64,000 nucleotides of DNA, from the IMG/VR virus record IMGVR_UViG_3300027770_000025, positions 248,001-312,000 of that record, one strand, 5' to 3'. Numbering within the stretch: position 1 is the first letter of the stretch; each line of letters begins with the position of its first letter. Position numbers and translations under genes: made by a program. The notes under the pieces are model-generated. The model ran no database searches. It had not been told where the DNA came from and saw only the letters and a list, made by a program, of their open reading frames with translations. Shown one piece after another: positions 42,232-62,830 of the stretch.

Positions 42232-43149
42232 TTATTCTTCTGGCATTTTTGCAGAGATCTCTTCAACTTTTCTTTTGTCGATGAATTCGGAAAGTAATGA
42301 AGCTATATTTTTTAGCATCTCTCTGTCTTGAGATCCTGAATCTACGGATCTTTTATAGTGGTTAAGTAAAGACTCCTCATCAGAATTGCTCTGTATATCC
42401 ATTGCTCTCCTAGTTAAATATTTAATATAAGGATCTGGATTTTTTACATCGCTAAAACCACAGGGAACTGTAATTATACCCATATCTTGAATTTTAAAAG
42501 AGGTTTTTTTATTTAGAGAATCGTTGTTTATATAAACACAAGGATGATGATCGCTAGAATTTAGATATATTTTAAATTCAGATAAAAGATCATCTTTAGA
42601 TCTCTTTGATATCTCGATAAGCATTCCATTATCTAGTGTAGCATCCCAAATATAATCACCGCAGGATTCAAATGATTCTATGGAACCAGGTATACCTATC
42701 AGATCCATAAGCAATTCTACATCGTCTTGTGCATTTTGTTTTATTCTATCTTGTCCTGTGGTTTTTGAATATTCTAAGTGATTTGCAAATTCCTCGATAA
42801 AGTCATCCATTCTTGATTTGTTATCTTCTTTTGATATCCACTTCTTATTCGGATCTAAGTCTAATTCTATTATAGCGCCATCAGCATCTTTTTTAAATGA
42901 AATTGCGTCATTGGGTATCCAAACGTGATCAGATTCTTTGCCATCTGAATCGACATAGCATATAGCTATAGATGTTCCATTTTTCTTAGGAATTATTATT
43001 TTATCTGAGGGTACTTCCTTTTCTCCAGCTGTTAAATCAATTGCGGATATAATATAACCACCGTCCCACGAATCTTTAATCCCGGGGATCTGGTAAGATT
43101 GACTCTCGTTAATTTTATTCTTCTGAAAATCTTTAAATCCTAATACCAT
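42232..43149 (-). CDS. Putative internal head protein (capsid-targeting-like N-terminus)
   Basis: Likely start ATG 43149: MVLGFKDFQKNKINES. Confidence 0.55.
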   Translation of the reverse strand: MVLGFKDFQKNKINESQSYQIPGIKDSWDGGYIISAIDLTAGEKEVPSDKIIIPKKNGTSIAICYVDSDGKESDHVWIPNDAISFKKDADGAIIELDLDPNKKWISKEDNKSRMDDFIEEFANHLEYSKTTGQDRIKQNAQDDVELLMDLIGIPGSIESFESCGDYIWDATLDNGMLIEISKRSKDDLLSEFKIYLNSSDHHPCVYINNDSLNKKTSFKIQDMGIITVPCGFSDVKNPDPYIKYLTRRAMDIQSNSDEESLLNHYKRSVDSGSQDREMLKNIASLLSEFIDKRKVEEISAKMPEE

Positions 43150-43153
43150 ATTA

Positions 43154-43594
43154 TTATACGTTATCGTTTCCAAAAGAAACCGTGATTTTAAAATTCTTTG
43201 GATCCGTAGATTTATTCATATCAATGGATAAATTACTGGGATAAGTAGGCATTACACTAGCAAGCTTTTCCACATTAAGTTGGCTATAATCTATTGTTTT
43301 GCCCGGTATCAAATCTATATCAAATTGTTTATGCTCGTTCGGATAATCATCCACGCTAAACTCTAGCTCTATTAGATCGATATTAAATACGAAATCATCA
43401 ATACCTGATTTTTTAATTATCAGATCAATGCTATATTCAATAAAAGCTTTAGAATCGTCAATGTCGCTATATTCCTCTGGTCTGTTAAAAAGATCGATTT
43501 CAATATATTTTAGTTCCGTGCCAAATGAGTAATCACCTCTAGAACTACCCTTCTTAGAAGAGCTAAATGCAGAATAGTCGTAAATTCTTCCCAC
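43154..43594 (-). CDS. Hypothetical late protein
   Basis: GTG start, GATATATA 19 nt upstream. Confidence 0.6.
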   Translation of the reverse strand: MGRIYDYSAFSSSKKGSSRGDYSFGTELKYIEIDLFNRPEEYSDIDDSKAFIEYSIDLIIKKSGIDDFVFNIDLIELEFSVDDYPNEHKQFDIDLIPGKTIDYSQLNVEKLASVMPTYPSNLSIDMNKSTDPKNFKITVSFGNDNV

Positions 43595-43613
43595 TTTTGT
43601 TAGATTTTTCTTC

Positions 43614-43653
43614 TATATATCCAATTTACTATTTTTAATAGCAGGAATATATA
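43614..43653. promoter_or_regulatory. Back-to-back putative late promoters (GATATATA minus 43614-43621; AATATATA plus 43646-43653)
   Basis: Motifs sit in the divergent intergenic gap. Confidence 0.55.
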
Positions 43654-43682
43654 ATTAAGTATACTAACTAAATAATAAGGGT

Positions 43683-44411
43683 ATGTCAAAGAGCATAAGT
43701 CCTATATGGTTCCTTAGAGAGCCTATAGATCCGGAGCACAAAGAGTATGTGCTATTAGATTACTTAAAAGAAACGAGTAAGGGGTTAAACAAGGAAAATT
43801 GTTACCCTATAATGAAAGAAATATCACGGATTGTAAAAATACTAAACGAATTTAGAAAGGATAAGATAATTAGTGAATCAGTCAAGAAGTCTCTAGGAAA
43901 AGAGGACAGAGAATATATCAATTCTTTTGTCCTTATTAATCTTCTACCAGAGCAAAGGGAAACACTAAATATTATAATAGAAGACTCACTGGATACATTA
44001 TATGATTATTCGGAGATATGTCTGGACATTTTAAAAGAAGAAGAATCTAAAATAAAAATATTTAGAATTCAATCAAAATTTGATGACGCGGATAATCTAG
44101 TAAATTCAGGGATAGTTATTATCAGAAATATGGTAACAGATAAACTACTTAATTATTTCTTTAAATCAAACGTTAGAATGGAAACGCCAGATGGAGAAAA
44201 GGAGGTTTCAATTTTAAAAAAAATACACCTAAAAAATTCATTCTTCTCATTGAACTATGAGTATATCTACCATGAGATACTAAATGAAATAAACACAGAT
44301 AATAAATACTCGCCTAAATTCTATGTTGTTGAAATATACGAGAACTTTGAAGAAACATCAGAGATCTATAAGTTAGCTAAAGAGAAATTCATAGAACATA
44401 TAGGGATATAA
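43683..44411 (+). CDS. Hypothetical protein (WFLREPIDPEHKEYVLLDYL)
   Basis: 242-aa plus-strand ORF with its own promoter motif and terminator. Confidence 0.75.
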   Translation: MSKSISPIWFLREPIDPEHKEYVLLDYLKETSKGLNKENCYPIMKEISRIVKILNEFRKDKIISESVKKSLGKEDREYINSFVLINLLPEQRETLNIIIEDSLDTLYDYSEICLDILKEEESKIKIFRIQSKFDDADNLVNSGIVIIRNMVTDKLLNYFFKSNVRMETPDGEKEVSILKKIHLKNSFFSLNYEYIYHEILNEINTDNKYSPKFYVVEIYENFEETSEIYKLAKEKFIEHIGI

Positions 44412-44418
44412 AGATCAC

Positions 44419-44444
44419 AAAAAAAGAGCCTATTGGCTCTTTTT
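44419..44444. terminator. Bidirectional intrinsic terminator
   Basis: aaaaagagcc-tatt-ggctcttttt between convergent genes. Confidence 0.85.
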
Positions 44445-44462
44445 ATTATAGAGTTATTCTTT

Positions 44463-44824: not shown

Positions 44825-45487
44825 TTAAGCTTCTTTTTTTCCAGTCAAAGAATTCCAGAAAGTTGAAAGATAATCCATTGCTCCTTTATCAGAATTCGAT
44901 TGTGATGCAGAGCTAGGGTTTCCGTAGAATTGTGATGCCTTATCTCTTGCAATACTAGAAAGCTGATTTTTGTCGGTATCACTTAGTGATGCTAAAGCAT
45001 CTCTTCCGACAGATCCTTTTGCTCCTGGTCCTCCGAATGCTTCTATTAATGCGTTCTCAATTATAGCTTTTCCTTTTTCTGATTGTAATCCTTCTCTCAA
45101 TGTTGAGTAAAGCCATCCGGTAGGTTTTATACCCATTTGGGTAGCTAAACTATCCAAACCTTTTCTTTGTATAAACTCTTGTAAAGCTTTTGCCATTAGC
45201 GGAGCAAGATAATCAACGTTAGCTTTTTCCCCTGTTAATAATTCAGGGTAATCCTCAATCGGAATCTGATCTACAACTTCCTGTACTATAACGGACATAT
45301 TGGAGTTTTCTTCAACACCAATCTGTTCCATTAACTTAGCAGCAACCTTTTGCTTTATAGTTTTTCTTAGACCCTCTCCGGCAAATCCAAGTAAGCCATT
45401 AAAGAATCCGCCTAAATCGCTAAACTGGAATGATTCGTTTGTTTCTCCATCCGAAAATGAATCAAAATTTTTAATAATTCTAGACAT
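44825..45487 (-). CDS. Putative internal head protein
   Basis: MSRIIKNFDSFSDGETNES N-terminus; GATATATA at 45508-45515. Confidence 0.55.
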   Translation of the reverse strand: MSRIIKNFDSFSDGETNESFQFSDLGGFFNGLLGFAGEGLRKTIKQKVAAKLMEQIGVEENSNMSVIVQEVVDQIPIEDYPELLTGEKANVDYLAPLMAKALQEFIQRKGLDSLATQMGIKPTGWLYSTLREGLQSEKGKAIIENALIEAFGGPGAKGSVGRDALASLSDTDKNQLSSIARDKASQFYGNPSSASQSNSDKGAMDYLSTFWNSLTGKKEA

Positions 45488-47519: not shown

Positions 47520-47561
47520 ATATTTCTTTTTATGGTGGAACATCGCACATGTTCCACCTAG

Positions 47562-47628: not shown

Positions 47629-50106
47629 TTATTTTGCGTCAATGTTGACGCATTTAAAAGGTGATTGCTGGGGTATCTCATCGAATGAAGTTGAATTCAT
47701 TCTTTTAACGTGTGTTGCTATGCTAGGATAAATGTCAGCAGCTATATAATAGCAGTTATTACCTAGGATGTTTTTTATTCCACTATCAGACCCTTTCATG
47801 TTACTCAATGTACCAATTCCCTCAAGTGCAGATGACACCTGTCTTTTTGAAGTTGTTTTCCTTTTCTTAATATCATCATACTCACCTACAATGATTTTAG
47901 ATCCTTCATAAGTTAATAAAGGTCCGCTGTCCGAGTCATCTTCAGTTAGACCAAATATACTATCCTTAGATATTCTTTTAGCTGTAGAAGATCCTAAAAC
48001 ATTATCATTAATCCATTTTATACAGCTTACAAATTTGCTTCCATCGAAGGTAACACAGTTAGCTATCATTACGAGGAAGTTGTTGATAGCAACAAATTCT
48101 TCCTTACCTAAATCTGGGCTTCTGTCACTTTTTTGTAAAGCAATATTGAAAGCTCTAGATATATCGCTCTTAAGATTATCATAATCAATAAAAGGAATTT
48201 CTTTATTCTTGATAGACGATTCCATCATTTCAAAAGGTCCGGAAAGATCTAGATCATCATTATCTGAATTTTTATTAATTAATTGTTTTATACCATCATA
48301 TCTAAACTGGGGTCTAATCATACCAAATGTTGTCCAGCCTTTAAGATAATTTCTAAGAAATTCCGTTGCGTCTTCGTTACCTAGTGTTTTAATCTGTCTA
48401 GTCTCTGCCCATTTATTCCAGTTGCATGGGGTTTTTAATGACGATGACCCTAGGTTGATATTATAAACTGCACCTTTAGCAAAAAAGTATGAAAATTCTT
48501 CCGCTGGTTTAGCTTTATCTAAAGCTAAATTCCAATCTTTTATAAATTCTGTGCTGTAGGATGATTTAAGAGATCCGTCCTGCTTAACAAAATCCTCAGA
48601 CTCCACTTTTATATTATACTCAGATCTAAGCTTTTTAGCTAATCCCCGTACTCCTGACGCTGATTTTGCATCAGATGATCCAGATGATTTTTCTGGAGAT
48701 GCTATTGCTCCTTGAGCTTTGTATTGAACAGCTAGCTCCTTTTCGAAGTCAGAATTGTTGATAATAATTTTACCCTCATTAACACTAGAGAATAATTCAG
48801 AAATACTTTTAACATATCCTGAATTAGATGTGCTCTCATGCATTTTTGTTCCTATCATGTGCAAAGCTGCATTAATGGCTTTCCTATTCTTAGCTGAAAC
48901 CCAATCAGAAGCAATTATATCAGTTAACAATGCTTGGTCTATCTGACCACTTGCATTTTTATTACCTGATAATTTTTGGATAGTTGAGATAACAGAAGTT
49001 GTAGCTGGGCCATATTTTCCATTAGGACCTCCTTTAGATTTTATCAGCTTACCTGCAGAAGTTATACCGTCACAAAGTGCAGTTTGAATAGCAAAGATTA
49101 ATCCGCTTCCTTTTATCTTCTTATCAGAATCTGAATCCCCTCTTTTTAAAGGAAAAATAGCTTTAGCAGTTTCTACTTCTTTAACCTCATTTTCATCCTT
49201 GATAACCCTAACCGCTATTCCATACTGTGTCTTTGCTCTAGTCATAAGATCTAGTGCTTGACTAACTAAATTAGTAACATCAGAATATGTTGTATAAACT
49301 TCTTCATCATCCTCTAATTTTTGTAAAGACCTATTTGCTGTTTGGATCATAGTGTTGTTAAATTCTTCTTGAAATTTATCAACTTGCTTTTCTAATTCTT
49401 CAAGCATTTTTCTATCCTTGTCGCCACCATCTGTATTATCTAAAGTCTTTCTCTTCTCGTCAAGATCTAAAAATGTTCTTTTCCAATCCCTTCCGTATCC
49501 TGATTTTTGATCTTTACCCTCAGAAGAACTTATTAAATTAGTAAGTAATTTTTTTAGATTATCAACTCTTCTTTTATACCCAGTGAAAATAGATTCATTT
49601 AGTATATCATCAAATTCAAATCCTTCGCTGTCATTTAGCTTTTCAGCTTCTTCTTCTGCTTGTTTAGCTATATTGTCTATCGAATTCTGAAGTTTAGTTG
49701 TAGCCATCTTAAACTGCTTAAATATAACATCATCTTTAGATTTAGAAATTTCCGAAGTCCTATCAAGTGCTTCAGCAAATTTATATAAGCTCTCTAGATA
49801 CAGTCTTTTAGCTTCAGCATATTTAGAATTTGCTAGATCATTATCGTCTGCGTAGTCGATCAATTTAGCGGTTAAAGATTTTACAGTTTTAGAACTTGCA
49901 ACATCAGAAAGCTTAAGTCTAATAACATCGGGATTTCTATCTCTCTTAGGAGCTAGGTCAAAGGTTAATATCTTGAAAGCATTCAAAGCATTATCGCAAA
50001 CCTTAACAAGCAAAGAATCTACTTGTTCATTTTCTAATAGCTTACTATAATACCCTTCTAATAGCTGTTTAGCTACCTGATTGTGAATATATGGATTATT
50101 GTTCAT
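47629..50106 (-). CDS. Putative internal virion protein with coiled coil and peptidoglycan-binding-like domain
   Basis: PLKRGD...IQTAL...GKYGPATTSVISTIQKLSG...SGQID resembles PG_binding_1; several LLE/LNE/VNE sites. Confidence 0.55.
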   Translation of the reverse strand: MNNNPYIHNQVAKQLLEGYYSKLLENEQVDSLLVKVCDNALNAFKILTFDLAPKRDRNPDVIRLKLSDVASSKTVKSLTAKLIDYADDNDLANSKYAEAKRLYLESLYKFAEALDRTSEISKSKDDVIFKQFKMATTKLQNSIDNIAKQAEEEAEKLNDSEGFEFDDILNESIFTGYKRRVDNLKKLLTNLISSSEGKDQKSGYGRDWKRTFLDLDEKRKTLDNTDGGDKDRKMLEELEKQVDKFQEEFNNTMIQTANRSLQKLEDDEEVYTTYSDVTNLVSQALDLMTRAKTQYGIAVRVIKDENEVKEVETAKAIFPLKRGDSDSDKKIKGSGLIFAIQTALCDGITSAGKLIKSKGGPNGKYGPATTSVISTIQKLSGNKNASGQIDQALLTDIIASDWVSAKNRKAINAALHMIGTKMHESTSNSGYVKSISELFSSVNEGKIIINNSDFEKELAVQYKAQGAIASPEKSSGSSDAKSASGVRGLAKKLRSEYNIKVESEDFVKQDGSLKSSYSTEFIKDWNLALDKAKPAEEFSYFFAKGAVYNINLGSSSLKTPCNWNKWAETRQIKTLGNEDATEFLRNYLKGWTTFGMIRPQFRYDGIKQLINKNSDNDDLDLSGPFEMMESSIKNKEIPFIDYDNLKSDISRAFNIALQKSDRSPDLGKEEFVAINNFLVMIANCVTFDGSKFVSCIKWINDNVLGSSTAKRISKDSIFGLTEDDSDSGPLLTYEGSKIIVGEYDDIKKRKTTSKRQVSSALEGIGTLSNMKGSDSGIKNILGNNCYYIAADIYPSIATHVKRMNSTSFDEIPQQSPFKCVNIDAK

Positions 50107-50120: not shown

Positions 50121-50393
50121 TTAGTATATATTTTCTTTAGGCCCAGCAGCATCCTTACCCGTATTGTTCTTTTGTATTTCAGCTGAAAGCGTTTTCATCA
50201 AAACCGATATTTCCTGATATATTCCAGCCTGTTGGTTTATACTTGCTATCTCTGAAGCAGTATCTCCAGGTTTTTTAGAATTCTTAGCATTTTTAATTGC
50301 ATCAAATTTTTGGGAAAGAGTTGTTTTTATTCCCTGTATTTTGGTCTCCCCGCTGTCTTCCTCGTTAATAACGAATTCTCTATATTTAAGCAT
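50121..50393 (-). CDS. Small putative internal head protein
   Basis: Likely start ATG 50393: MLKYREFVINEE. Confidence 0.6.
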   Translation of the reverse strand: MLKYREFVINEEDSGETKIQGIKTTLSQKFDAIKNAKNSKKPGDTASEIASINQQAGIYQEISVLMKTLSAEIQKNNTGKDAAGPKENIY

Positions 50394-51321
50394 ACTTTCT
50401 AGCAATTGTTATTTTAGATCTTAGATCTCTTATCTCATCCATATACTTCTCTCTAATCTCCTTTATTCTTTTAGAAGCTAGTTCTCTTGCTCGATCCGGA
50501 CTGGCTGAATTTTCAACTTCTTTATTTAGGATGTCCCTTTCCATATCCATAGCAACATATCTGTCGTTCCTCTCTTTTAAAAGGAAAGAAACAAGTTTTT
50601 TTCCTTGAGCTGGAACGTATTCTTTTATAGCATTTGTAAATTCGACTAAAGGAAGTTTAGCTACGAATTCAAACGAGGCATCGCTTTCATTCCCTGATTT
50701 AGTATAATTATCTGGACCTGATGTTGATTTAGTTGATCCTGATTTATCCTTAAATCTCTCCCCTGCTTCAATGTCTTTAGTCATCAGGTTTCCGTACTTA
50801 TTTCTGAAGTCAATATCTTTCTGCTTAGCTTTTAATAATGCTGCTTTATATTTAGAGTATAATGATCCAGAAAGCGAAGAATCTGCTAGGTTTTTAGCTC
50901 TCTTATACATCTCCTCAGCTATATCAGCATCAACTTTTGTTTTAAGCTTTTCCCAATATATTCTAACTCTTTTATTATCGCTTATGACATCTCTAACCTT
51001 AGTGAATATGCTTTCCGTCTTCTTCTCGTGAGATCTAGACTGAGCATCCATTAACTCATTATTTCTTTGAATCAAACGATCGATTCTTTTTATCTCTGCA
51101 GGATCGCTTTTGGTTTGGGATCTTTCTAGATCTAACTTATCGATCTCAACATTAATATCTTCCCATTTTTCAACATATTCAAGCTCTGCTGATCTGTACT
51201 CATTAGCTAATTTATCTAGTGATTCTATACTGCCACCAAAAGTTCCACTTAGCCAGTTTTTTATAGTGTCGAATATGCCAGCTTCATTTAAGCTGTCCCA
51301 TTCTTTAAATTTTAAAGTCAT
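50386..51321 (-). CDS. Coiled-coil putative internal head/core protein
   Basis: MTLKFKEWDSLNEAGIF N-terminus; charged helical protein; apparent paralog of the next gene. Confidence 0.6.
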   Translation of the reverse strand: MTLKFKEWDSLNEAGIFDTIKNWLSGTFGGSIESLDKLANEYRSAELEYVEKWEDINVEIDKLDLERSQTKSDPAEIKRIDRLIQRNNELMDAQSRSHEKKTESIFTKVRDVISDNKRVRIYWEKLKTKVDADIAEEMYKRAKNLADSSLSGSLYSKYKAALLKAKQKDIDFRNKYGNLMTKDIEAGERFKDKSGSTKSTSGPDNYTKSGNESDASFEFVAKLPLVEFTNAIKEYVPAQGKKLVSFLLKERNDRYVAMDMERDILNKEVENSASPDRARELASKRIKEIREKYMDEIRDLRSKITIARKYA

Positions 51322-51323: not shown

Positions 51324-52472
51324 CTAGTTGTTTAGTTTATCTTTTGCAGTTCTTAATTTACTGGCGTCAATATTACCTGAAGGAGTAACGAATACATCAG
51401 AAATTATTTTCTTAGTTCCTGAGTTTGCATCTTCACCATCAGCTATTCCTTGATTTATCATATTAGTTAACTTTGTGAACTCTTGCTCCTTGCTTAATGT
51501 CTTATCTATATCAGATTCAGTTTTGCCTAGATTCCTGAATAATTTTAATAGATTTTTCTTAGAATCCAAAGCTGAGCTAAGTTCAAGTAATTCAATCTTA
51601 GATTTTTCTATGTAAGATTTGCTAACCTTATCTGGATTAGCACCTATTCTTTTCTCCAATACTGTTAACTTTCTCTCGATATTTGCTCTTAAATCAGCAA
51701 TATCTTTTTCAAGTTCCTTTTTTCTCTCGATGATATCTTTTCCTCTTCTCCCCGCAACCTTTTTCTTTTCCTTTTCCGAATCTAAGGAAAGGTCCTCCGT
51801 ATCGGGTCCATTATCCTTCTTTTCTTCTTCCGATTTTTTATCCATTTGATCTTTCAGATTCTGAGCTTTCTCTTCTGCTTCTTTCTTTTTAGCATTAATC
51901 TTATCCTGAAACTTCTTGATGTCTACGTCGTCAGCTTTATCCCTAGCCAATTTATATTCAAGTTCAGCTAATGCAATTTCATCGTCTGCTCTTCCTGCCT
52001 CGTAATACTCTCTTCTTCTAGTGTTATTATCAATAACCTTAGAGACGAAATCTTTTGCTTTTTTTATCTTAAGTGAATGCGACTTAATGAAAGTTTCAAA
52101 CTCTTTCGTTTTAACGTCTCTTTCTCTTTCAACAGAGCTTATTTTTCCCTTGTCGTTTATTGAACTTAAACCATCTATTTCAGATTCCAGTTTTTCGATA
52201 TTTTCTTCGAAATTTGCTCTTTTCTCGATAGCATCAATTTCTAAATCTACAAGAAGCTTTCTTGCCTTATCGATCATTCCTACCCTAGATAAAGAGCCTA
52301 AGAAAAACTTAGAAAGTGAATTTTTAAGGTAGTCACCAAAGATGCCTTCGTTTACTGTGTGATTGGGTTCTGATCTCTCTAGGGAAGCAAACTCCTCACT
52401 AAGTTCACGGTCTACAGTTTCTATCAGAGACTCGTATTTTTTAAAATCATTAAAAGATGGTAGATTCTTCAT
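51324..52472 (-). CDS. Coiled-coil putative internal head/core protein
   Basis: MKNLPSFNDFKKYESLIE...VNEGIF; K/E-rich; GATATATA at 52499-52506. Confidence 0.6.
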   Translation of the reverse strand: MKNLPSFNDFKKYESLIETVDRELSEEFASLERSEPNHTVNEGIFGDYLKNSLSKFFLGSLSRVGMIDKARKLLVDLEIDAIEKRANFEENIEKLESEIDGLSSINDKGKISSVERERDVKTKEFETFIKSHSLKIKKAKDFVSKVIDNNTRRREYYEAGRADDEIALAELEYKLARDKADDVDIKKFQDKINAKKKEAEEKAQNLKDQMDKKSEEEKKDNGPDTEDLSLDSEKEKKKVAGRRGKDIIERKKELEKDIADLRANIERKLTVLEKRIGANPDKVSKSYIEKSKIELLELSSALDSKKNLLKLFRNLGKTESDIDKTLSKEQEFTKLTNMINQGIADGEDANSGTKKIISDVFVTPSGNIDASKLRTAKDKLNN

Positions 52473-54344: not shown

Positions 54345-56309
54345 TTATCTTTTTGGAAATTTTTGCTCAAGTGCAGAAGCAATATAATTCATATAATCTG
54401 AAGAATATCCTTGTGGTTTTGCAGTCTCGGCTACATTTTCACTCTCGTCAAGTTTTTGTACTCCAACTGTTTTAGCTCCAAGCTGACGTGTTGACCAGAA
54501 ATTTTTGATCTGATAAGGTGTATCTAAATTATAGAAGTTTGACTGAGCAACAATTGATTGCTGATGTCCTTCAGATAAAGATTCCCATACCGGAGCATAT
54601 TCTGCTGGCATTTGGTCAATAAACTTAAGACCTGTTTTAGAGGTGTCTTCTGACTCGTTAAGAGTTGTTTCGTTAGCCTTTTGTGTTTCGGCTGATGTTC
54701 TTACTGCTTTAGCAGCTTCGTTGATATTTGAAGCGGTTTTTTGTGTCTTAACCGATTCTATTAATGAATCAATCTGTGAAGTTAGGTTCTCGTAGTTTCC
54801 AGCAAAGCCAGATTCGTTAAGACCTGCTTCTGCAGATAGATTTACATTTTCTATTAATGATTGCGTAGATCCTATAGGCAATTTGTTAGCAACTGATTCT
54901 GCAATATACTCACTGTAAGCAATACCTTTGTTTAATTTCTCCGCAATGTATTCTGAATAATCTAATCCTTTATTAACATTCTCTGCTAAATAATCAGAAT
55001 ACTCAATGTTTTTGTTTAGATTCTCTGCAATGTATTCAGTGTATTCGATTCCGTTGTTTAATTTTTCTGCAACGTACTCAGTGTAAGCAATACCTTTATC
55101 TAAGCTTTCGCCAAGATATTCTGAATAAGCAATACCTTTATCTACGTTTTCTGCTAGATACTCAGAATATTGAACGCTTTGATCTAATTTTTCTGCTAGG
55201 TATTTAGAATACTCGATGTTCTTATCTACGCTCTCAGCTACATACTCTGAATAAGAAATAGATTTGTCAACATTCTCAGCTAGATATTTAGCATAAGAAA
55301 TATTTTTGTCTAGATTTTCAGCTAAATATTTACTGTAGCTAATATTGCTATCTAAGTTTTCTGCAAGATATTCGCCATACTTAATAGAATCTTCTAAATT
55401 CTCAGCTAAATATTCTGCATATTTTTCAAGCTTAGCAACTCTTTCCTCAAGAGCATCATTAGCTTTACTTAAATCTTCGGATTCGCTTAGCGATGTTTTT
55501 TGGGTTTTAGCCTCTGCGATAGCTGCTTTCATCGAATCCATTTCTTTTTTCAAGAATACTGAATACTGATTAAGCTCCTCCGCAGTAACAAATTCATTGT
55601 TCTCCATAAGGACTGATTTATTTTTATTGTCTGATTTATTCACGATTTTGTTGAATTCTTCGTTATTTTCAACTTTATATATCTTCAGTGAAGATTCTTT
55701 TTCGATACCTAAAGATTCATTTAAGCATTCTAATGAATTTAATATGCTATTATTTTTCATTGCTTGAAAATATTGAGATGTAAACCCTTCACTCTCATAT
55801 ACTCTTTCAAGCTGAGCATCCTTAAATCCAGGATCTGCTACTAGATCATAGGTAAAAATTTTCTTAATCGCCACCTTCTTATCGTTGCCAACGGATCCAG
55901 CTGCTCTTGAAGAAATAGAAAGAGGAACACCAGCATCTACTAGATTCTTAGCTATTCTACCCGCTGGGGTATCAAGAAGCTTAACCTTAATTTTAAGATC
56001 CCTATTGCTTTTGTCGTAGTTAAGATCTGTCACCATATGTGAGATATTCTTAAGTGATACGTCAAATTTCTCCGGGTGATCTAATTCTCCAACTAGTCTA
56101 TTCTGAGATATCTTATCTTTTAAATAATCTAGGTGAGGTAGATATTCGCTCTCTTCGTAAATTCTATTGTTGTTGTTCTCTTTACCGAAAACAGCAGCAA
56201 TACCTTCCAGAACGTAATCATCTTTATCAGACTTTTTAGCTTCTAGAACGGAATTCTGTCTTTCGAGGATGAATACCATGTTTTCGTTTATTGATTGCAG
56301 TTGTGGCAT
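54345..56309 (-). CDS. gp21: Prohead protease (T4 gp21-like) fused to a repetitive scaffold domain
   Basis: NNNNRIY, GELDHP, LLDTPAGRI, ISSRAAGSV and YDLVADPGF motifs, followed by 14-aa repeats; immediately upstream of the capsid gene. Confidence 0.92.
   Translation of the reverse strand: MPQLQSINENMVFILERQNSVLEAKKSDKDDYVLEGIAAVFGKENNNNRIYEESEYLPHLDYLKDKISQNRLVGELDHPEKFDVSLKNISHMVTDLNYDKSNRDLKIKVKLLDTPAGRIAKNLVDAGVPLSISSRAAGSVGNDKKVAIKKIFTYDLVADPGFKDAQLERVYESEGFTSQYFQAMKNNSILNSLECLNESLGIEKESSLKIYKVENNEEFNKIVNKSDNKNKSVLMENNEFVTAEELNQYSVFLKKEMDSMKAAIAEAKTQKTSLSESEDLSKANDALEERVAKLEKYAEYLAENLEDSIKYGEYLAENLDSNISYSKYLAENLDKNISYAKYLAENVDKSISYSEYVAESVDKNIEYSKYLAEKLDQSVQYSEYLAENVDKGIAYSEYLGESLDKGIAYTEYVAEKLNNGIEYTEYIAENLNKNIEYSDYLAENVNKGLDYSEYIAEKLNKGIAYSEYIAESVANKLPIGSTQSLIENVNLSAEAGLNESGFAGNYENLTSQIDSLIESVKTQKTASNINEAAKAVRTSAETQKANETTLNESEDTSKTGLKFIDQMPAEYAPVWESLSEGHQQSIVAQSNFYNLDTPYQIKNFWSTRQLGAKTVGVQKLDESENVAETAKPQGYSSDYMNYIASALEQKFPKR
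54897..55421 (-). repeat. Coding tandem repeat, 42-nt (14-aa) unit, 13 copies
   Basis: Y(S/A/T/G)(E/K/D)Y(L/V/I)(A/G)E counted 13 times at 14-aa spacing. Confidence 0.9.
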
Positions 56310-56344: not shown

Positions 56345-56367
56345 GACAGAAAAAATTATTTTTTTGC

Positions 56368-58992
56368 TTATTCATATTTTATTCTATCCTTTGTCTGCTC
56401 AACAAATCTTTTAGCAAGTTCAAAGGCTTCACCATCTGTCACCCTATATTTTCTTGTTTTATCTCCAAAAGCAGCATATCTGTTTTTAAACTTAACCTCT
56501 GTAGTATCCCCCTTATCATCAAAAAATTCTTTTGCAAAAGTTATTGTTTTCCAATTTTCTATCTTAAGTGCCTCCTTATCCCTTGTGGTTAATATGGTAT
56601 CGAAGAGATTGACACCTCCAGGCAATTGTGTGTCTTTTATAACTGTAGAATTTTTTCTATCCTTAATATCAACGTCTTTGGCATTAGTTTTTATATAATA
56701 ATCATCCGCCTTGATATCTACATCTTTTTCCTTATCCTTATCCTTATCCTTATCATTATTAGAGTCATCAGCATCTTGAACCTCATCTTTGACAACTGGT
56801 TTAATCTCTTCTTTCTTTTCTACGTAATTATAAAGTCCTCTTTTAGTTTCTTCCAGCATCTCATCGGTATTAGGTTCAATCTCAATTGAATCACCATTTC
56901 TAGCCTCCCAGTCGATAGGATCTAATAAGAAGTTGGTAAAATCACCAGTCTCATATTTTCCTCTAAGCTTAGGATCTGCATAATCCCTCTCTACAACAAT
57001 ATAGATTGCTATTTCTGCAGGTCCGCTTTTTTGTTCAGAAGTTAGATCTATCATTTGTGATCCTTTAGAATCCATATCATCCTTTCCTTCTACCGAATTT
57101 CCACTTACTGTTTTAGTCTGAACGTTTTCGTCTTCTAATACAGGATACCCCTGTTTCTTAAAGTCAGAGAATTTAGTTATTACCTGAGACGATGTATTTA
57201 AGTTATCGTTAACCTCTACCTCTACCTTCTCTTCATCCTCAACAGGTTTTTGTTCAGCAGTTTCTATTTTATTTTCAGTCTCTCTTGATAAGGTAACCCC
57301 AAAAATCCTATCAAGATCAGCAGAAGAATATTTAGATAATTCCTCAGTGGTTACTTTTTTACCAACAACATTTATTATATTATCCTCAGAGTCACTGAAA
57401 TGAAACTCATACGATTCTGGTGCATCCGGATCAGATATCAATAATGTTCCAGACGAATTATCAAACTCGGACTCAAATAATTCCCAATCACATGAACCTT
57501 GGTAATTAAACAGAGCATTAAGATCATTCTCGATAGATAACATTTTAAAATCAAGATCTTCATTATCGAAATAGCCTCTTTCTACCACATCACTATTATC
57601 AAATGAGATTAAAGTTAGATCATACTTTGATATTTGCTTCTGTACTTCTTTCGAGTTGATCTGGCTTAATATGAATACTGATTCGGATCCTGTATCTGCA
57701 ACCTTTACTATCTCCATCGTTGTTCTAGTCTCATTGCTGAATAAGAATGAAACAGCCATTCCCCATCCTCCAGCAGGTTGTGACCAACATACGGTGATAG
57801 GCACACCAATCTTTATTGATTTTGGATCGAATGATTCTTTAGCAAAATCATCAACGTTTCCTAATCTAGGAGCTTGATTTCCACTATACCAATTCCAAGT
57901 TGATCCGACAGCATTAATAGCTAAAAGTGCCCAACCTATCGGATTTGTCCATTCTGCTGCTTTAACAATACTGCCTGCGGCTTTAGCTCCAGTAACAAAT
58001 CCTTTGACCATACCTAAAGATTTTGCTGCTATACCTGCATTCTGCATTCTGCCCAATGATCTCTGGAGTTTAGCTCCTTCTACCCCGGCCTTTCCTATCT
58101 TACTCCAGAATGAAACTGCTTTCATTGGATTTACTGCGCTCCAAATTCCCTTTATACCTTTACTGGCTTTAGTAAGCAGGCTAGCTGATTTTACTGCAGT
58201 CTTTCCTGTTCTTAGAAACTTTATTGCTTTCCAACCTCTTCTTAGAACAATTGCACCACCTAAATATTTAAGGCTAGCAAATATTGCGGTTCCTGCTACA
58301 GCATAAGTAGCTACTTTAATACCAGTATTAAGTGCGTCCTTTGCTAAACCAGGTCCAGTAGAATCTTCATCTACTTTTCCAGCTAGTTTTCTGTCACTGA
58401 TGTCAAATAACATAAACTTAGAGTTTTTGTTATTTGTCTCTAGAGGCATCATCTTATAGGCATCCAATGTCTCAATTAGATTAGCCCCAGACTCCTGATC
58501 TTCCAGACAAAGAAAAACAGCTTTTGGATTTCCTGGTGTCTGGCTCTTAACAATAAATTCATTATCCAATTTTCCGTCCGCCTCTAATTTATTATAGGCA
58601 AAGTGGAATTTTACAACCTTTTCCTCTTCTGACTTAGTATTGGCAGCATCTTCAAATACTGAATTGGAAATGAAATCACCAAATTTAGATACCCTTCCTT
58701 CTGGCTGAAATTCATTAGATTCCCTTAATGCTTTTTGCATAGAGTAACCGCTGCCTCCTAAAGATTCCCTAATTATCTCAGAAATATCCCCGTAGTTTGG
58801 TATTTCTTCGGAATCAGCAACCCATTCGCTAGGGTTTTTATCCAACCAATTTTTAAAGTCTGATGAGTATGCCCACCACTGAAAGTCTTCGAGTGATTGA
58901 CTTGTTGCTCCCTCCATTTTAATAGGTATAGTAAACATGGGGAAATCGTTTCCCCTAGCATATTTACCGTCTGTTGCTAATAATATTATCAT
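56368..58992 (-). CDS. Putative internal/ejection protein with a basic-hydrophobic membrane-active segment
   Basis: Acidic protein with a central Ala/Gly/Lys-rich segment ending TNPIGWALLAINAVG; adjacent to head genes. Confidence 0.5.
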   Translation of the reverse strand: MIILLATDGKYARGNDFPMFTIPIKMEGATSQSLEDFQWWAYSSDFKNWLDKNPSEWVADSEEIPNYGDISEIIRESLGGSGYSMQKALRESNEFQPEGRVSKFGDFISNSVFEDAANTKSEEEKVVKFHFAYNKLEADGKLDNEFIVKSQTPGNPKAVFLCLEDQESGANLIETLDAYKMMPLETNNKNSKFMLFDISDRKLAGKVDEDSTGPGLAKDALNTGIKVATYAVAGTAIFASLKYLGGAIVLRRGWKAIKFLRTGKTAVKSASLLTKASKGIKGIWSAVNPMKAVSFWSKIGKAGVEGAKLQRSLGRMQNAGIAAKSLGMVKGFVTGAKAAGSIVKAAEWTNPIGWALLAINAVGSTWNWYSGNQAPRLGNVDDFAKESFDPKSIKIGVPITVCWSQPAGGWGMAVSFLFSNETRTTMEIVKVADTGSESVFILSQINSKEVQKQISKYDLTLISFDNSDVVERGYFDNEDLDFKMLSIENDLNALFNYQGSCDWELFESEFDNSSGTLLISDPDAPESYEFHFSDSEDNIINVVGKKVTTEELSKYSSADLDRIFGVTLSRETENKIETAEQKPVEDEEKVEVEVNDNLNTSSQVITKFSDFKKQGYPVLEDENVQTKTVSGNSVEGKDDMDSKGSQMIDLTSEQKSGPAEIAIYIVVERDYADPKLRGKYETGDFTNFLLDPIDWEARNGDSIEIEPNTDEMLEETKRGLYNYVEKKEEIKPVVKDEVQDADDSNNDKDKDKDKEKDVDIKADDYYIKTNAKDVDIKDRKNSTVIKDTQLPGGVNLFDTILTTRDKEALKIENWKTITFAKEFFDDKGDTTEVKFKNRYAAFGDKTRKYRVTDGEAFELAKRFVEQTKDRIKYE

Positions 58993-58999: not shown

Positions 59000-59809
59000 T
59001 TATTTTTCTGTGTATATTTTATCGTAAGACTCGGAATTTACATCTATTAACTTTTCTATATATCCCTCGTTTCTAAGCTTCTTAAATGTTAAATTCCCTA
59101 TAGAGAACTCACCATCTTTACTTAATCCCTCTTTTCTCATCTTCATAATTTTCTCTTTCAGCTTAGTACTTCTCTTATAAAGCTCTTTTGCATTGTGTGG
59201 TAGAACTGAAGAAGCTACTAGTCTAGTGTGAAGCTGCTCAATCTCGTATGCCATAGCCTCGAATTTTTTATTCACATCCTTCTCGTCTATCTCTGGCGGA
59301 TCAAATACTGGGTTCTTTATCCATTCGTTATTCAGTAGAGAAAATAATCCAGATGAGTTATGGGGGAATTTAGCATCCTGTATATAAAGCTCGACGTCAT
59401 ATCCTCGAATAGCTACATTATGTCTTAGATTCCATATGAATCTAATACCATCTAAAGCTGATTTAAGTATCTGAGGATTTTCATCATCAATCCCCTCAAG
59501 ATTAACTATAACATGAACGTCAAGATCTGATAGATTTGTGTAATTGAAATTGGCTAGTGATCCGGTTAATTGGATATCGACTATATCTTTCTCTTTAAGT
59601 ATTTCGCCGAACTTTTTAAAAAAATCACCTGCTATCCTAAGAAGTTTTTTTCTAACCCTCTGGTCTAATGTCCATTCAATATCATCTCCCTTGGTTTTCT
59701 TAGTCCAAAAAATAGGGTTTAGCTCATCGTGATAGAATGGATTTACCTGTCTCTCTAGTATAGGAGAAGATAAGTTAATGTAATTTTTATAAGATAATAC
59801 TGAACCCAC
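59000..59809 (-). CDS. Pol-beta superfamily nucleotidyltransferase
   Basis: LTGSLANFNYTNLSDLDVHV (GS...DxD) plus VELY. Likely GTG start at 59809, downstream of GATATATA. Confidence 0.8.
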   Translation of the reverse strand: MGSVLSYKNYINLSSPILERQVNPFYHDELNPIFWTKKTKGDDIEWTLDQRVRKKLLRIAGDFFKKFGEILKEKDIVDIQLTGSLANFNYTNLSDLDVHVIVNLEGIDDENPQILKSALDGIRFIWNLRHNVAIRGYDVELYIQDAKFPHNSSGLFSLLNNEWIKNPVFDPPEIDEKDVNKKFEAMAYEIEQLHTRLVASSVLPHNAKELYKRSTKLKEKIMKMRKEGLSKDGEFSIGNLTFKKLRNEGYIEKLIDVNSESYDKIYTEK

Positions 59810-59826
59810 AAAAAAAGCTTTTCTTG

Positions 59827-59918
59827 TATATATCAAAGAAAAGCTTTAGATGTTATTATAAACTGAATATTTAGCTAGGGAAGCATACCTTTAGCATAAC
59901 TTCCATTACTGTACTAAC
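59827..59918. repeat. 92-bp direct repeat, copy 1 (3' end of exonuclease gene plus late promoter)
   Basis: Identical by eye to 60595-60686. Confidence 0.9.
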
Positions 59919-60104: not shown

Positions 60105-60575
60105 TTATCTCCCGAAATAATCTTTAACCTCTTTTGCGGTAAGAAGTTCATATTCAGCATAACCATTCGTTAAAACTAGAAATTTTCCGTTTGGTATGGT
60201 GAAGACAAAACTATCGTCCAGTACTTTAAAATTATCACCTATTTTATAAAGATCGAAAACCCCCTCGCTAAAGCAAGCGAATTCAAAAGTATCCCCCAAA
60301 GATGGAAATACCTGTATACTTATTTGACTGGCGTAATCGGCTCCATATACATCGTCTTTCGATACAAATTGTTCTAACTCTCGTAGGTAAGCTGCCTCTG
60401 ATAGGCTATTTATGGTACCAACTGCTAATCCGCCACCGCCCATATCGGCTATACAAATTACCCCGTTCCTGTAATCATTAGAACCTTCTCTAAAACCTGC
60501 ATTAGGGTTAGGTGTTCCAATTCTTGGATCTTCTCTGAAAGATTCAAATTGTGCAATGTGTTTTGTTCTGTTCAT
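60105..60575 (-). CDS. Hypothetical protein with capsid-targeting-like N-terminus, inside the repeat-flanked insert
   Basis: MNRTKHIAQFESFRED; GATATATA at 60595-60602. Confidence 0.65.
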   Translation of the reverse strand: MNRTKHIAQFESFREDPRIGTPNPNAGFREGSNDYRNGVICIADMGGGGLAVGTINSLSEAAYLRELEQFVSKDDVYGADYASQISIQVFPSLGDTFEFACFSEGVFDLYKIGDNFKVLDDSFVFTIPNGKFLVLTNGYAEYELLTAKEVKDYFGR

Positions 60576-60594: not shown

Positions 60595-60686
60595 TATATA
60601 TCAAAGAAAAGCTTTAGATGTTATTATAAACTGAATATTTAGCTAGGGAAGCATACCTTTAGCATAACTTCCATTACTGTACTAAC
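60595..60686. repeat. 92-bp direct repeat, copy 2
   Basis: Identical by eye to 59827-59918; overlaps the true 3' end of the exonuclease gene. Confidence 0.9.
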
Positions 60687-61346: not shown

Positions 61347-61360
61347 AATTTGGTTTTTTA

Positions 61361-61368
61361 CAAAGATA
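61361..61368 (-). promoter_or_regulatory. Bacteroidota-type sigma70 -7 element TATCTTTG
   Basis: Matches TAnnTTTG, 14 nt upstream of the exonuclease start. Confidence 0.5.
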
Positions 61369-61391
61369 ATAGAATATCGCGGGAATAAAAA

Positions 61392-62291
61392 TTATTTCTT
61401 CGAATTTTTATTTATTACTATAGGGGGAAGAGATTTATGATCCATTCTGTATTTTAAGCATGCATCTTCTCTTGCTGGGGATTCTATGATTACGTCTATA
61501 TCCAAGCCGAATGTTGGTATCCTTCTTTTGAGGTATTCTGATTGCTTTGGTATAGATGGTATTCCATAAGCATCACATTCTTGTGACTCTGAATGTATAA
61601 ATACAGGTTTTTGCCCAGCCTTCCAGGTTGAGCAGGAAAGAAAAAGGGCTTCTCTTATACTAAGTCCACCATCATTAAACTGATGTGGCAATAGCCTAAA
61701 ACATATTGGAATATTAGATCTGTAGTAAATACCAGATAGAAGATCAGTAACTGAGAAAAGACTGGGTTTGTCATCATTAACAACACAAAGTTTAGAAACG
61801 ACTGTACTGTCCATCTCCGATAATCTCTCACAAAAGAGATCCATAGTATTTCTTCTATTTCCATAAGCTGATCCAACTCTAACCATTATAGACGGGTAGT
61901 TAATCCCAATTAAATCCAGAATGCTAGATAGTCTGGATAGTAACGATATTGTAGAGCTCTTAATATTATCCAATTGCGTACCTAAGAAATATTCCCTGTT
62001 TATACATAGAAATATTCTGAGATCATTTTTAGTTATTGCCGAATTTATCTCATCGATTATATTCGATACAGGGGATTCTTCCTCTATTACCTCATTAAAG
62101 AAATTTGGTGAAAATTTAAAATTACATACATCTATACATGTGATCTCTATATCGAGCTCAAGATTTAATTTTATATTATCTCTAATTACACAGAGAAACT
62201 CCTCATATGAATTTATCGGGTAGTTTATATCATATGATTCAGAGTGTGGACCTATATAAGATAATTTCGGTGGCGTTTGTCCTAATATCAT
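61392..62291 (-). CDS. uvsE: UV-damage endonuclease (UvsE/UvdE)-like protein, catalytically degenerate
   Basis: VGSAYGNR, NDDKPSLFSVTDLL, IPICF, EALFLSCSTW and HSES follow the UvsE motif order, but several metal ligands are replaced. Confidence 0.75.
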   Translation of the reverse strand: MILGQTPPKLSYIGPHSESYDINYPINSYEEFLCVIRDNIKLNLELDIEITCIDVCNFKFSPNFFNEVIEEESPVSNIIDEINSAITKNDLRIFLCINREYFLGTQLDNIKSSTISLLSRLSSILDLIGINYPSIMVRVGSAYGNRRNTMDLFCERLSEMDSTVVSKLCVVNDDKPSLFSVTDLLSGIYYRSNIPICFRLLPHQFNDGGLSIREALFLSCSTWKAGQKPVFIHSESQECDAYGIPSIPKQSEYLKRRIPTFGLDIDVIIESPAREDACLKYRMDHKSLPPIVINKNSKK

Positions 62292-62305
62292 TTAATCTTT
62301 TTAAG

Positions 62306-62334
62306 ATTGTACTGATAAAAGTATTTTTAGTTTC
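62306..62334 (-). promoter_or_regulatory. Putative promoter GAAAC-N18-TACAAT
   Basis: Second copy of the motif at 42192-42220. Confidence 0.45.
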
Positions 62335-62341
62335 TGTTAAA

Positions 62342-62830
62342 TTAGCCCCCTGTTGTTTCCAGTCCTAACTCGGACGAATTATAAACAGTTTTAGAATTAT
62401 ATCCTTTATCAACGATTTCGCTGTTTTTGTATTTGGTTTTTGTGGAAATGTTACCGTGTTCACCACCTTCTGCAAACTTAACGGTATTACCCTTAATCTC
62501 TATAACTCTTTCAGTCTTTTTACCTTTATTATAAACTTGAATGAAATATCTATAGCCTATATTATTAGGATTTCTGAATGCTCTAACAATAACACCAGTT
62601 ACTTTATCCTTTGAATCTAACGGTTCAGCTATTACCACATCACCTATCTTATATTCATCACCCTTTACATTGGTTGGCATATTGGGATCAGTACCGACAG
62701 AAATTGATAAATCGCTAAAAGGTTTATAGTTTATTTTTAGGACGCCATTAGCTCCTCCATAACCATAGGTATCACCAAAAGCTCCGCTTTCTCCACCAAA
62801 GTCCTCGTTTATTGATTTAATATACTTCAT
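62342..62830 (-). CDS. Hypothetical protein with capsid-targeting-like N-terminus and an SH3/KOW-like domain
   Basis: Likely start ATG 62830: MKYIKSINEDF; YKIGDVVIAE...VTGVIVR; GATAAATA at 62836-62843. Confidence 0.6.
   Translation of the reverse strand: MKYIKSINEDFGGESGAFGDTYGYGGANGVLKINYKPFSDLSISVGTDPNMPTNVKGDEYKIGDVVIAEPLDSKDKVTGVIVRAFRNPNNIGYRYFIQVYNKGKKTERVIEIKGNTVKFAEGGEHGNISTKTKYKNSEIVDKGYNSKTVYNSSELGLETTGG

Follow-up and report, generated by a model that had tools for sequence, protein, structure and literature searches.

Do the many dissimilar proteins encoded near the head genes of an uncultured phage, and beginning with a similar short peptide, carry a capsid-targeting tag of the type known from phage T4, and if so how far does the set extend? 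The question arises from a window of 64,000 nucleotides (positions 248,001 to 312,000 of IMG/VR record IMGVR_UViG_3300027770_000025), in which a preliminary description pointed to eight such N-termini, to partial versions and internal copies in further proteins, and to their likely use in tagging ten or more diverse proteins for encapsidation and injection. The observation is real and the set is much larger than was described, with about 50 genes (roughly 45-60, ~12%) of the 348,582-bp genome beginning with the two-part peptide where about one is expected by chance. Most lie outside the window, about 30 of them in an island at genome 97-138 kb. The aspects of the interpretation that can be tested from sequence came out in its favor, though encapsidation, cleavage after the Glu and injection are inferred by analogy with T4, as there are no proteomic or experimental data and no cultured relative.

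The shared N-terminal peptide

The peptide has the form M-[KR]-x-[IL]-K-x-aromatic-x-x-aromatic, a spacer of 0-7 residues, and then [LIV]-N-E followed by S/A/G. Tags are 13-19 residues, or 11 in a compact form in which the two blocks overlap. Among the 40 strongest, the residue at P3 is L in 23, I in 9 and V in 6, that at P1 is always E, and that at P1′ is S, A or G in 23. All eight N-termini of the preliminary description are present at minus-strand starts (Table 1). With a position-specific matrix five of them are strong (21-25 bits) and one, for which a GTG start that is conserved in relatives is used, is intermediate. Another is a short form with the lead-in and the INE site but without the aromatic pair, and though its matrix score is low, the form MK[YH]IK[ST][IL][NY]E is conserved in relatives. 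The remaining one is weak and doubtful, with no orthologue in 80 related loci. The two cases considered partial have conserved N-termini with an aromatic pair but no [LIV]-x-E site, and so are not full tags and are not counted here. Of the internal copies, the two in the 874-aa protein are real and conserved in relatives, whereas in the 825-aa protein the conserved feature is [LIV]-N-E followed by SIFTGY and not an aromatic-pair copy.

The signal is far above chance. A loose regular expression hits 52 of 434 N-termini, against 10-13 in three controls (shuffled, internal-window and internal-Met). The matrix gives 48 genes at >=12 bits against 0.86 expected, and 32 at >=20 bits against 0.05, with internal positions matching at about 1/50 of the N-terminal rate. 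Aromatic-x-x-aromatic is the strongest column pair, and an untrained search for gapped triplets places hydrophobic-x2-aromatic-x2-aromatic first, at 75 genes against 20.6 expected (z = 12), while the same analysis on the related jumbo phage PTm1 finds nothing (6 against 8.3 expected). However, judging by the rate in T4, about 5 of the 40 strongest hits may be chance, and four false positives were identified, namely a dTMP-kinase-like P-loop, the tail sheath, a cREC domain and an antisense ORF.

With the tag removed, the proteins are almost all unrelated, 59 ORFs falling into 56 BLAST clusters. They include peptidoglycan hydrolases, a GDPD esterase, an ATP-grasp enzyme and an adenylate kinase, and the domains start only after the tag, from residue 27 for the adenylate kinase domain, 21 for RimK pre-ATP-grasp, 63 for CHAP, 121 for GDPD and 191 for SLT. 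Most, though, are small ORFans with no enzyme domain. Selection acts on the protein, since synonymous codons are mixed at the conserved positions, with all six Leu codons plus Ile and Val at P3, and GAA:GAG at 26:14, the same as the genome ratio. Orthologues in 80 environmental relatives keep the tag, its grammar being retained in 48/48, 85/95 and 71/95 orthologues at >=60, 40-60 and <40% identity, respectively. There are 163 tagged ORFs in 1.1 Mb of relatives, and the strict DNA pattern occurs in five complete relatives with zero hits in the control.

Tagged genes sit almost only in units headed by the GATATATA motif, which also heads structural genes and is inferred to be a late promoter. 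The motif lies directly upstream of 32/48 tagged genes against 50/377 untagged (Fisher p = 1e-14), and at unit level 44/48 are of the late-motif type and 2/48 early. Equal frequency in early genes, which the preliminary description had named as counting against its interpretation, is accordingly not what is found. The genome also encodes a homologue of the T4 gp55 late sigma factor.

Table 1. Features of the head region and of the tagged genes in the window (window coordinates).
Feature	Position	Strand	Gene or product	Matrix score (bits)	Details
Short form MKYIKSINE	62804..62830	-	162-aa protein (62342-62830)		
Doubtful tag MNRTKHIAQFESFRE	60531..60575	-	156-aa ORFan (60105-60575)	5.2	Late motif 27 nt upstream
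Tag (V)GSVLSYKNYINLSSPILE	59753..59809	-	269-aa nucleotidyltransferase-like protein (59000-59809)	15.3	Weak Pfam NTP_transf_2 match and phrog_36119; tag grammar kept in 46 of 47 orthologues
Two internal tag-like modules	56368..58992	-	874-aa head-cluster protein		VSKFGDFISNSVFE at residues 101-114 (58651-58692); ITKFSDFKKQGYPVLE at residues 605-620 (57133-57180)
Prohead protease fused to scaffold-like extension	54345..56309	-	654 aa		S77 domain roughly residues 29-144 (55878-56225); Pfam Peptidase_S77 and S80, phrog_207
Thirteen tandem 14-residue repeats	54885..55442	-	Inside the protease		Residues ~290-475; TRF period 42 nt
Major capsid protein, T4 gp23 family	52589..54319	-	576 aa		N-terminal 43 residues (54191-54319) with sites LINE-6, P[LI]IE-18 and HSLNE-43 followed by SAGAY
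Tag MKNLPSFNDFKKYESLIE	52419..52472	-	382-aa protein (51324-52472), just downstream of the capsid gene	21.5	Second conserved site, ..HTVNE followed by G, ends at residue 42 (52344-52367)
Tag MTLKFKEWDSLNE	51283..51321	-	311-aa protein (50386-51321)	21.3	Tag kept in 48 of 51 distinct orthologues
Tag MLKYREFVINE	50361..50393	-	90-aa protein (50121-50393)	23	Kept in 24 of 24 distinct orthologues
Conserved internal site ..ILNE followed by SIFTGY	47629..50106	-	825-aa protein		E171 (49579-49629); conserved in 23 distinct orthologues
Tag MSRIIKNFDSFSDGETNE	45434..45487	-	220-aa protein (44825-45487)	25.2	Late motif 28 nt upstream
Targeting-type block without a cleavage site		-	114-aa protein (44463-44807)		..REILDFKKF..
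Targeting-type block without a cleavage site	43154..43594	-	146-aa protein		Conserved N-terminus M-[SG]-R-I-Y-D-Y-x-A-F
Tag MVLGFKDFQKNKINE	43105..43149	-	305-aa protein (42232-43149)	24.6	Kept in 20 of 20 distinct orthologues, down to 27% identity

The head genes

The head module is of T4 type. The capsid protein matches Pfam Gp23 (PF07068) at 1e-40 and aligns end to end with T4 gp23, though at only about 21% identity, the closest capsid protein of an isolate being 44% identical. Its N-terminus, with three sites of the kind found in the tags, is invariant in 55 relatives. The protease (Peptidase_S77, PF03420) gives E = 2e-6 to T4 gp21 in BLASTP, with GELDHPE and SISSRAAGS aligned to T4 GELNHPP and GVSSRGLGS, the conserved GELxHP and SSR motifs. 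Each of the 13 tandem repeats in its scaffold-like extension holds Y-x-x-Y-[LIV]-[AG]-E, the same core as the cargo tags and as T4 YQEFIAE, and each holds a cleavage-type site. About 60 full-length orthologues have 10-14 copies, mostly 12-14. The array is predicted to be helical, but at low confidence.

The 382- and 311-aa proteins are paralogues, with 30% identity over 139 aa. Orthologues of the former keep its tag, E42 is invariant in 32 sequences, and in an AF2 model (pLDDT 79) the protein is all long helices, with residues 7-17 forming a helix. The 874-aa protein, for which no family hit was obtained, is probably a multiply cleaved core protein; both its modules are conserved in relatives with variable spacer length, the second being preceded there by a [LI][LN]E site followed by S. 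The 825-aa protein is a candidate for having a long propeptide.

Relation to known systems

[quoted passage not shown] In the IPIII tag, MKTYQEFIAE, to which the tag of the 90-aa protein is the closest copy, the aromatic residues 4 and 7 drive targeting and residues 8 and 10 (I, E) drive processing, with gp21 cutting after L/I-x-E (PMC9026906), and gp22 being cut at a Glu-Ala bond. The two blocks of the present tag correspond to these residues. A matrix trained only on the phage under study scores T4 ipIII, ipII and ipI at 15.6, 12.3 and 11.4 bits, which is above the 12-bit gene cutoff for ipIII and ipII only, and several non-IP T4 ORFs score as high or higher. There are differences, as here carriers number about 50 instead of 3-4, there are three extra lead-in residues (M-K-x-I-K-x), a spacer of 0-7 residues separates the blocks where T4 has none, and Asn is strongly preferred at P2. 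The carriers include enzymes, and their mature parts are not basic like the T4 internal proteins, their median pI of 5.5 being that of the whole proteome. The phage itself is an uncultured one, probably of a Bacteroidota host.

The variable internal-protein loci of T-even phages, whose diverse products share only a CTS and are thought to be anti-restriction cargo (PMC3012670, PMC9026906), offer a parallel to the island of tagged genes in that a conserved tag is found on a fast-changing set of small unrelated proteins. Here, however, the scale is larger, the genes are scattered over the whole genome and no anti-defense function has been identified. In the giant phages phiKZ, 201phi2-1 and SPN3US many head proteins (19 processed in 201phi2-1; more than 50 head proteins in SPN3US) are cut after Glu by a gp21-related protease, and many are ejected. 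Those propeptides are mostly over 100 residues, share no common sequence and have S/A-x-E sites, in contrast to the short stereotyped tag with L/I/V at P3, and only the 825-aa protein resembles the long-propeptide type. Tenacibaculum phage PTm1 ORF-300, annotated as ‘prohead core scaffolding protein and protease’, likewise has an S77 domain followed by a long repetitive extension just upstream of the capsid gene. Its repeat unit is different (W..[FY]TKxLSE[GS]), while LR756500 has a degenerate form of the Y..[YH][LIV]A repeat. Relatives with the same kind of fusion nevertheless lack the tag family, PTm1 genome-wide and LR756500 and Lak-A2 around the capsid gene, and so the protease family alone does not predict the system. 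Judged from the tag sequences, without a dedicated predictor, Sec, Tat or lipoprotein signal peptides are not indicated, as polar and aromatic residues alternate, the tag ends in Asn-Glu and no hydrophobic run is visible.

Alternative interpretations

It is possible, though unlikely, that the peptide is only a removable propeptide that keeps enzymes inactive or soluble until a protease cuts after the Glu, without directing them into the head. The processing block is the best-conserved part, and several tagged proteins are lytic enzymes for which a zymogen form would make sense. However, the conserved aromatic pair and the M-K-x-I-K lead-in have no role in a pure cleavage site, and in T4 those positions are the targeting determinants; the preponderance of small ORFans among the carriers also counts against it. 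About as unlikely is an address for some other late destination or partner, such as a chaperone, the tail or baseplate lumen, or a cytoplasmic assembly such as a nucleotide-synthesis complex. The N-terminus of T4 gp23 directs proteins to GroEL (cited in PMC10052503), and the N-terminus of the capsid protein here has a related W-x-P-[LI]-[IL]-E segment shared with gp23. The tagged adenylate kinase lies directly behind the two ribonucleotide reductase subunits without a late motif of its own, although its tag is kept in five relatives. Set against this are the gp21-type site with which the tag ends, the repetition of its core in the protease-scaffold, the strongest cluster of tagged genes flanking the capsid and protease genes, and the lack of the tag on any recognized tail protein except one false positive.

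That the shared N-terminus is a nucleotide-level feature of late mRNAs, such as a translation-initiation region or a downstream box, seems very doubtful. The tag does begin at the start codon, lies 8-39 nt behind the late motif and starts with AT-rich Lys, Asn and Ile codons, but synonymous codons vary freely at the conserved residues, substitutions are conservative at the protein level (F/Y/W, L/I/V), the spacer length varies, and internal copies occur in the 874-aa protein and the protease. Chance, composition or recent duplication of a single gene family was tested and rejected. About seven island genes share a downstream EQIxWLDKC module and are paralogues, as are the 382- and 311-aa proteins, but the cluster counts and the controls above point the other way, and T4 and PTm1, both AT-rich, give background levels.

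A proposed route into the head

The favored interpretation, held with fair though not full confidence, is that the peptide is a T4-type capsid-targeting sequence joined to a prohead-protease cleavage site, the lead-in and aromatic pair being the targeting block and [LIV]-N-E the processing block. Some features fit less well. Certain tagged proteins, the adenylate kinase among them, look like housekeeping enzymes, the tag is only weakly amphipathic as an alpha-helix (z = 1.8), a prediction of the complex of tag plus repeat array gave no answer, and about 12% of genes as head cargo would be very many. In the sequence of events proposed, the tagged proteins would be made late in infection together with the head proteins, and the tag would dock them onto the assembling prohead core, which is probably built around the repeat array fused to the S77 protease. 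Once the gp23-type shell closes, the protease would cut after the Glu, freeing the mature proteins inside the head and chopping the scaffold and propeptides into short peptides that leave. Docking, cleavage, retention and ejection into the host are each inferred, but on this view the retained proteins would be available to leave with the DNA at the next infection, and the sequence alone seems to list the proteins that this phage packs beside its DNA.

Genome context and extent of the tag family

The 348,582-bp virus contig (an IMG/VR record, CheckV 100% complete) has 33-39% G+C with nearly all genes on the minus strand, and the region of interest holds the head module, with an 874-aa protein, a 654-aa prohead protease (Pfam Peptidase_S77 and S80, phrog_207), a 576-aa major capsid protein of the T4 gp23 family (Pfam Gp23, 1e-40) and a run of unknown proteins. 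For most of the head-cluster and cargo proteins PHROGs, Pfam and NCBIfam gave nothing, and a Foldseek search of the PDB with a model of the 382-aa protein gave only generic helical-bundle matches, none with E <= 0.001. That the 874-aa protein is the portal was considered and rejected, two T4-type portal genes lying elsewhere (an unusual tandem duplication). By capsid protein, the nearest database phages are an uncultured 462-kb phage (LR756500) and the Prevotella Lak megaphages (43-44% identity), then Tenacibaculum phages PTm1 and PTm5 (35%), though IMG/VR holds at least 80 closer environmental relatives with 71-97% capsid identity, several of them complete genomes of 270-434 kb.

All eight N-terminal peptides to which the preliminary description drew attention are where it placed them. 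With 434 genes called crudely across the genome, a loose expression (aromatic-x-x-aromatic, up to 7 residues, [LIVMFT]-x-E, within the first 24 residues) hits 52 N-termini, whereas random internal windows give 12.3 +/- 3.2, shuffled N-termini 10.1 +/- 3.1 and windows starting at internal Met 13.5. Alignment of the hits on the aromatic pair shows a sharp consensus, M-[KR]-x-[IL]-K-x-[FY]-x-x-[FYW], a spacer of 0-7, then [LIV]-N-E followed by S/A/G. A matrix of these two blocks finds 48 genes at >=12 bits against 0.86 expected from the rate at 89,003 internal positions, and 32 at >=20 bits against 0.05, while scanning every ATG, GTG or TTG that opens an ORF of at least 45 codons gives 59 distinct ORFs at >=13 bits. 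A compact 11-residue form, in which the site overlaps the aromatic pair (for example MKNLKPFAIFE/A, the slash marking the putative cut), adds ten genes against 0.26 expected, some of them missed by the matrix. A search that assumes nothing, comparing gapped residue-class triplets in the first 25 residues with the rest of the proteome, ranks hydrophobic-x2-aromatic-x2-aromatic first (75 genes against 20.6 expected, z = 12.3), followed by hydrophobic-N-E and hydrophobic-x-E-small.

The family therefore has about 50 members (range 45-60), roughly 12% of the genes, an extension of about five-fold over the ten or more proposed in the preliminary description. Most lie outside the window, with about 30 in an island at genome 97-138 kb, where many are small ORFans, most have their own late motif, about seven share an EQIxWLDKC module after a compact 11-residue tag and one has leucine-rich repeats; the island resembles the variable internal-protein loci of T-even phages. 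Four false positives were identified: a dTMP-kinase-like protein whose first strand and P-loop mimic the pattern, the tail sheath, a cREC domain read from an internal GTG, and an antisense ORF. The rate of strong hits in T4 (2 per 150 kb) suggests about five chance hits among the 40 strongest. Literature searches, which did not extend to subscription journals, found no description of such an expanded tag family.

Coordinates of features considered in the text (L013, L101 and L103 are locus designations)
Feature	Position	Strand	Remark
Major capsid protein	window 52589-54319		
Protease-scaffold	window 54345-56309		
Promoter-like motif example	window 56310-56345		upstream of the protease gene
Asparagine synthase (GATase + Asn_synthase) and thymidylate-kinase-like P-loop protein	window 45546-46952 and 46959-47543	minus	inside the head-gene cluster; neither truly tagged; both with early-type boxes upstream
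3'-5' exonuclease (phrog_25228, DNA polymerase exonuclease-like)	window 60639-61346	minus	between tagged late genes; early-type box upstream
Nucleotides preceding the 269-aa nucleotidyltransferase-like gene	window 59810-59840		read as ..RKAFF in frame
Two adjacent T4-type portal genes (538 and 536 aa)	genome 316138-317394 and 317764-319008	minus	Pfam Portal_T4, 230 and 192 bits; outside the window
Ribonucleotide reductase subunits, dUTPase-like gene and tagged adenylate kinase	genome 217032-221656 (L013:7032-11656)		
Island of about 30 tagged genes	genome 97,700-138,300	both	
gp55-like sigma factor	genome 320414-320773		Sigma70_r2
T4 gene 61.1 and uvsW.1 region	NC_000866: 18966-19130 and 114210-114440, respectively		CTS-like N-termini
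Protease-scaffold fusions, PTm1 ORF-300 and LR756500	L103:10153-11922 and L101:18052-19950, respectively		

Paralogy and RNA signals as alternatives

Neither shared ancestry of the tagged genes nor a signal acting at the RNA level accounts for the pattern. With the tag removed, the 59 ORFs fall into 56 BLASTP clusters at E 1e-3, the exceptions being the 382- and 311-aa proteins next to the capsid gene and the small family sharing the EQIxWLDKC module. Recognizable domains begin only after the tag, and are adenylate kinase (from residue 27), RimK-type ATP-grasp (21), CHAP (63), PG_binding_1 (68), GDPD (121) and SLT (191), plus leucine-rich repeats and a weak cell-wall hydrolase match. At the conserved positions codons vary synonymously, P3 using all six Leu codons plus Ile and Val codons, with the GAA:GAG ratio at P1 being 26:14, equal to the genome ratio. 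The substitutions (F/Y/W, L/I/V) and the variable spacer are also what selection on a peptide would produce.

Association with promoter-like motifs

The most over-represented upstream 8-mer is GATATATA, with 60 of its 77 copies within 80 nt upstream of a called gene. It precedes the protease, the 874-aa gene, portal, sheath and baseplate genes, and lies 8-39 nt before the starts of structural and tagged genes. A second motif class, TAnnTTTG, is found about 33 nt upstream of runs of small genes, at 74-95 kb; it appears to resemble the -7 box of Bacteroidota sigma-A promoters, which also hints at the host. A late-type motif lies within 100 nt upstream of 32 of 48 tagged genes, against 50 of 377 untagged (Fisher p = 1e-14). 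When each gene is assigned the first motif upstream in its unit, tagged genes give 44 late, 2 early and 2 unassigned, and untagged genes 133, 124 and 120. Tagged genes inside the early block at 74-95 kb lie on the opposite strand with their own late motif. The genome encodes a homologue of the T4 late sigma factor gp55. A condition which the preliminary description set for its own rejection, that the motif be equally common in early genes, is not fulfilled, though that GATATATA is a late promoter is an inference. With the 269-aa nucleotidyltransferase-like gene, which starts at a GTG, conservation across relatives of the nucleotides preceding the start suggests a conserved promoter or leader rather than coding sequence.

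A difficulty is the tagged adenylate kinase, which lies immediately behind the two ribonucleotide reductase subunits (large and small) and a dUTPase-like gene, with no late motif of its own. This looks like a metabolic gene rather than cargo. Its tag is nevertheless kept in five relatives at 63-70% identity, one of which has an AATATATA box in front.

Phylogenetic conservation

Orthologues of six tagged window proteins in the 80 related loci keep the grammar in 48/48, 85/95 and 71/95 distinct sequences at >=60, 40-60 and <40% overall identity, with the residues in between changing freely. The related loci hold 163 tagged ORFs in 1.1 Mb (14.7 per 100 kb), the figure being 11.5 for this genome, 1.3 for T4, and zero for about 100 kb of LR756500, Lak-A2 and PTm1. 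The strict DNA pattern for M-K-x-[IL]-K-x-[FY]-x-x-[FY] occurs 13 times here and 2-6 times in each of five complete relatives, with the reversed control giving none. In more distant relatives, the tag was not found in about 40 kb around the capsid gene of LR756500 and of Lak-A2 (read with TAG = Q as published for Lak), nor in 216 kb of PTm1, a related AT-rich jumbo phage that shows no excess (6 against 8.3 expected). The tag family is thus a trait of this clade, not of all phages with this type of protease.

Relationship to the T4 capsid-targeting sequence

The T4 internal proteins carry the tag MKTYQEFIAE, which is cut off by gp21, and any protein fused to it is packed into the head. The tags are 10-20 residues long and bind proteins to the scaffolding core. 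Suppressor genetics on IPIII placed targeting mainly at residues 4 and 7 (Tyr, Phe) and processing at residues 8 and 10 (Ile, Glu), while gp21 cuts after L/I-x-E, and cuts gp22 at a Glu-Ala bond. These are exactly the two blocks found here. A matrix trained only on this genome scores T4 ipIII at 15.6, ipII at 12.3 and ipI at 11.4 bits, though only ipIII and ipII clear the 12-bit gene cutoff, and several non-IP T4 ORFs score as high or higher. The matrix also picked up two small T4 ORFs that begin with CTS-like peptides, MKTFKEFIKE (gp61.1, 54 aa) and MLLEFKQFLYE. The protease aligns to gp21 across the conserved GELxHP and SSR motifs, and the capsid protein aligns end to end with gp23.

The same site type is invariant in the capsid protein's N-terminal 43 residues (LINE-6, P[LI]IE-18, HSLNE-43/SAGAY). 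It also occurs in the 382-aa protein (VNE-42/G, with the Glu invariant), in the 825-aa protein (ILNE-171/SIFTGY), and twice in the 874-aa protein, where it forms whole tag-like modules with variable spacers.

The reading as a T4-type capsid-targeting and cleavage tag is consistent with the defining features that can be assessed from sequence, though packaging, cleavage and ejection are not shown directly. The two-block logic is that of T4. What differs is an added lead-in and a variable spacer, a far larger and more varied set of carriers, their presence in a distant, uncultured clade of jumbo phages, and a putative protease-scaffold built from tandem copies of the tag core. The mature proteins are not basic, unlike the T4 internal proteins, and an amphipathic alpha-helix test of the tags gave only a weak result (the hydrophobic moment at 100 degrees gives z = 1.8, and the peak is at 120 degrees). 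Fifty cargo species is a large number, though giant phages such as SPN3US do have more than 50 head proteins, and 201phi2-1 has 19 processed ones.

Tandem repeats of the tag core in the protease

Residues ~290-475 of the 654-aa protease are 13 tandem 14-residue units (DNA period 42 nt), each of which holds Y-x-x-Y-[LIV]-[AG]-E (YSEYLAE and variants), the T4 core YQEFIAE with Tyr in place of Phe. The copy number is 10-14 (mostly 12-14) in about 60 full-length orthologues, and no other protein in the genome has more than one such heptad. An AF2 model of the whole protease is poor (pLDDT 46), and gives only a low-confidence indication that residues 281-476 are helical. The protease-scaffold fusion is older than this clade, but the repeat unit differs: PTm1's homologue, annotated as a scaffold-protease fusion, has W..[FY]TKxLSE[GS], and LR756500 has a degenerate version of the present one, Y..[YH][LIV]A.

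It is proposed, as an inference, that this array is the core scaffold, that cargo tags would join it as extra copies of the same helix, and that the protease would dismantle everything by cutting each unit. A complex prediction of the array (residues 285-480) with the first 60 residues of the best-tagged protein gave no answer (score 0.00), which is not evidence either way. In a more far-reaching form, which is tentative and perhaps less likely than not, the phage addresses about 50 different proteins to its head with one bipartite tag, and the scaffold is itself a polymer of that tag, so that cargo would be loaded by co-assembly of like helices and released when the protease cuts every copy. 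If so, any protein could become cargo by acquiring about 15 codons, and the full set of packaged and probably injected proteins, including hydrolases, kinases and an ATP-grasp enzyme, could be read from sequence in a whole clade of uncultured 270-430-kb phages.

Implications

Proteins that phages carry in the head and inject ahead of gene expression are a main route for countering host defences, and are normally found only by virion proteomics of cultured phages. If the reading is right, a short sequence rule lists the candidate cargo of an uncultured jumbo phage and of dozens of environmental relatives, giving a ready catalogue of candidate take-over and envelope-attacking proteins. It would also extend the T4 targeting tag, a proven tool for packing foreign proteins into capsids, to a distant lineage that probably infects Bacteroidota, with the repeat array on the protease offering a concrete and testable idea of what the tag binds, which is still unclear even for T4.
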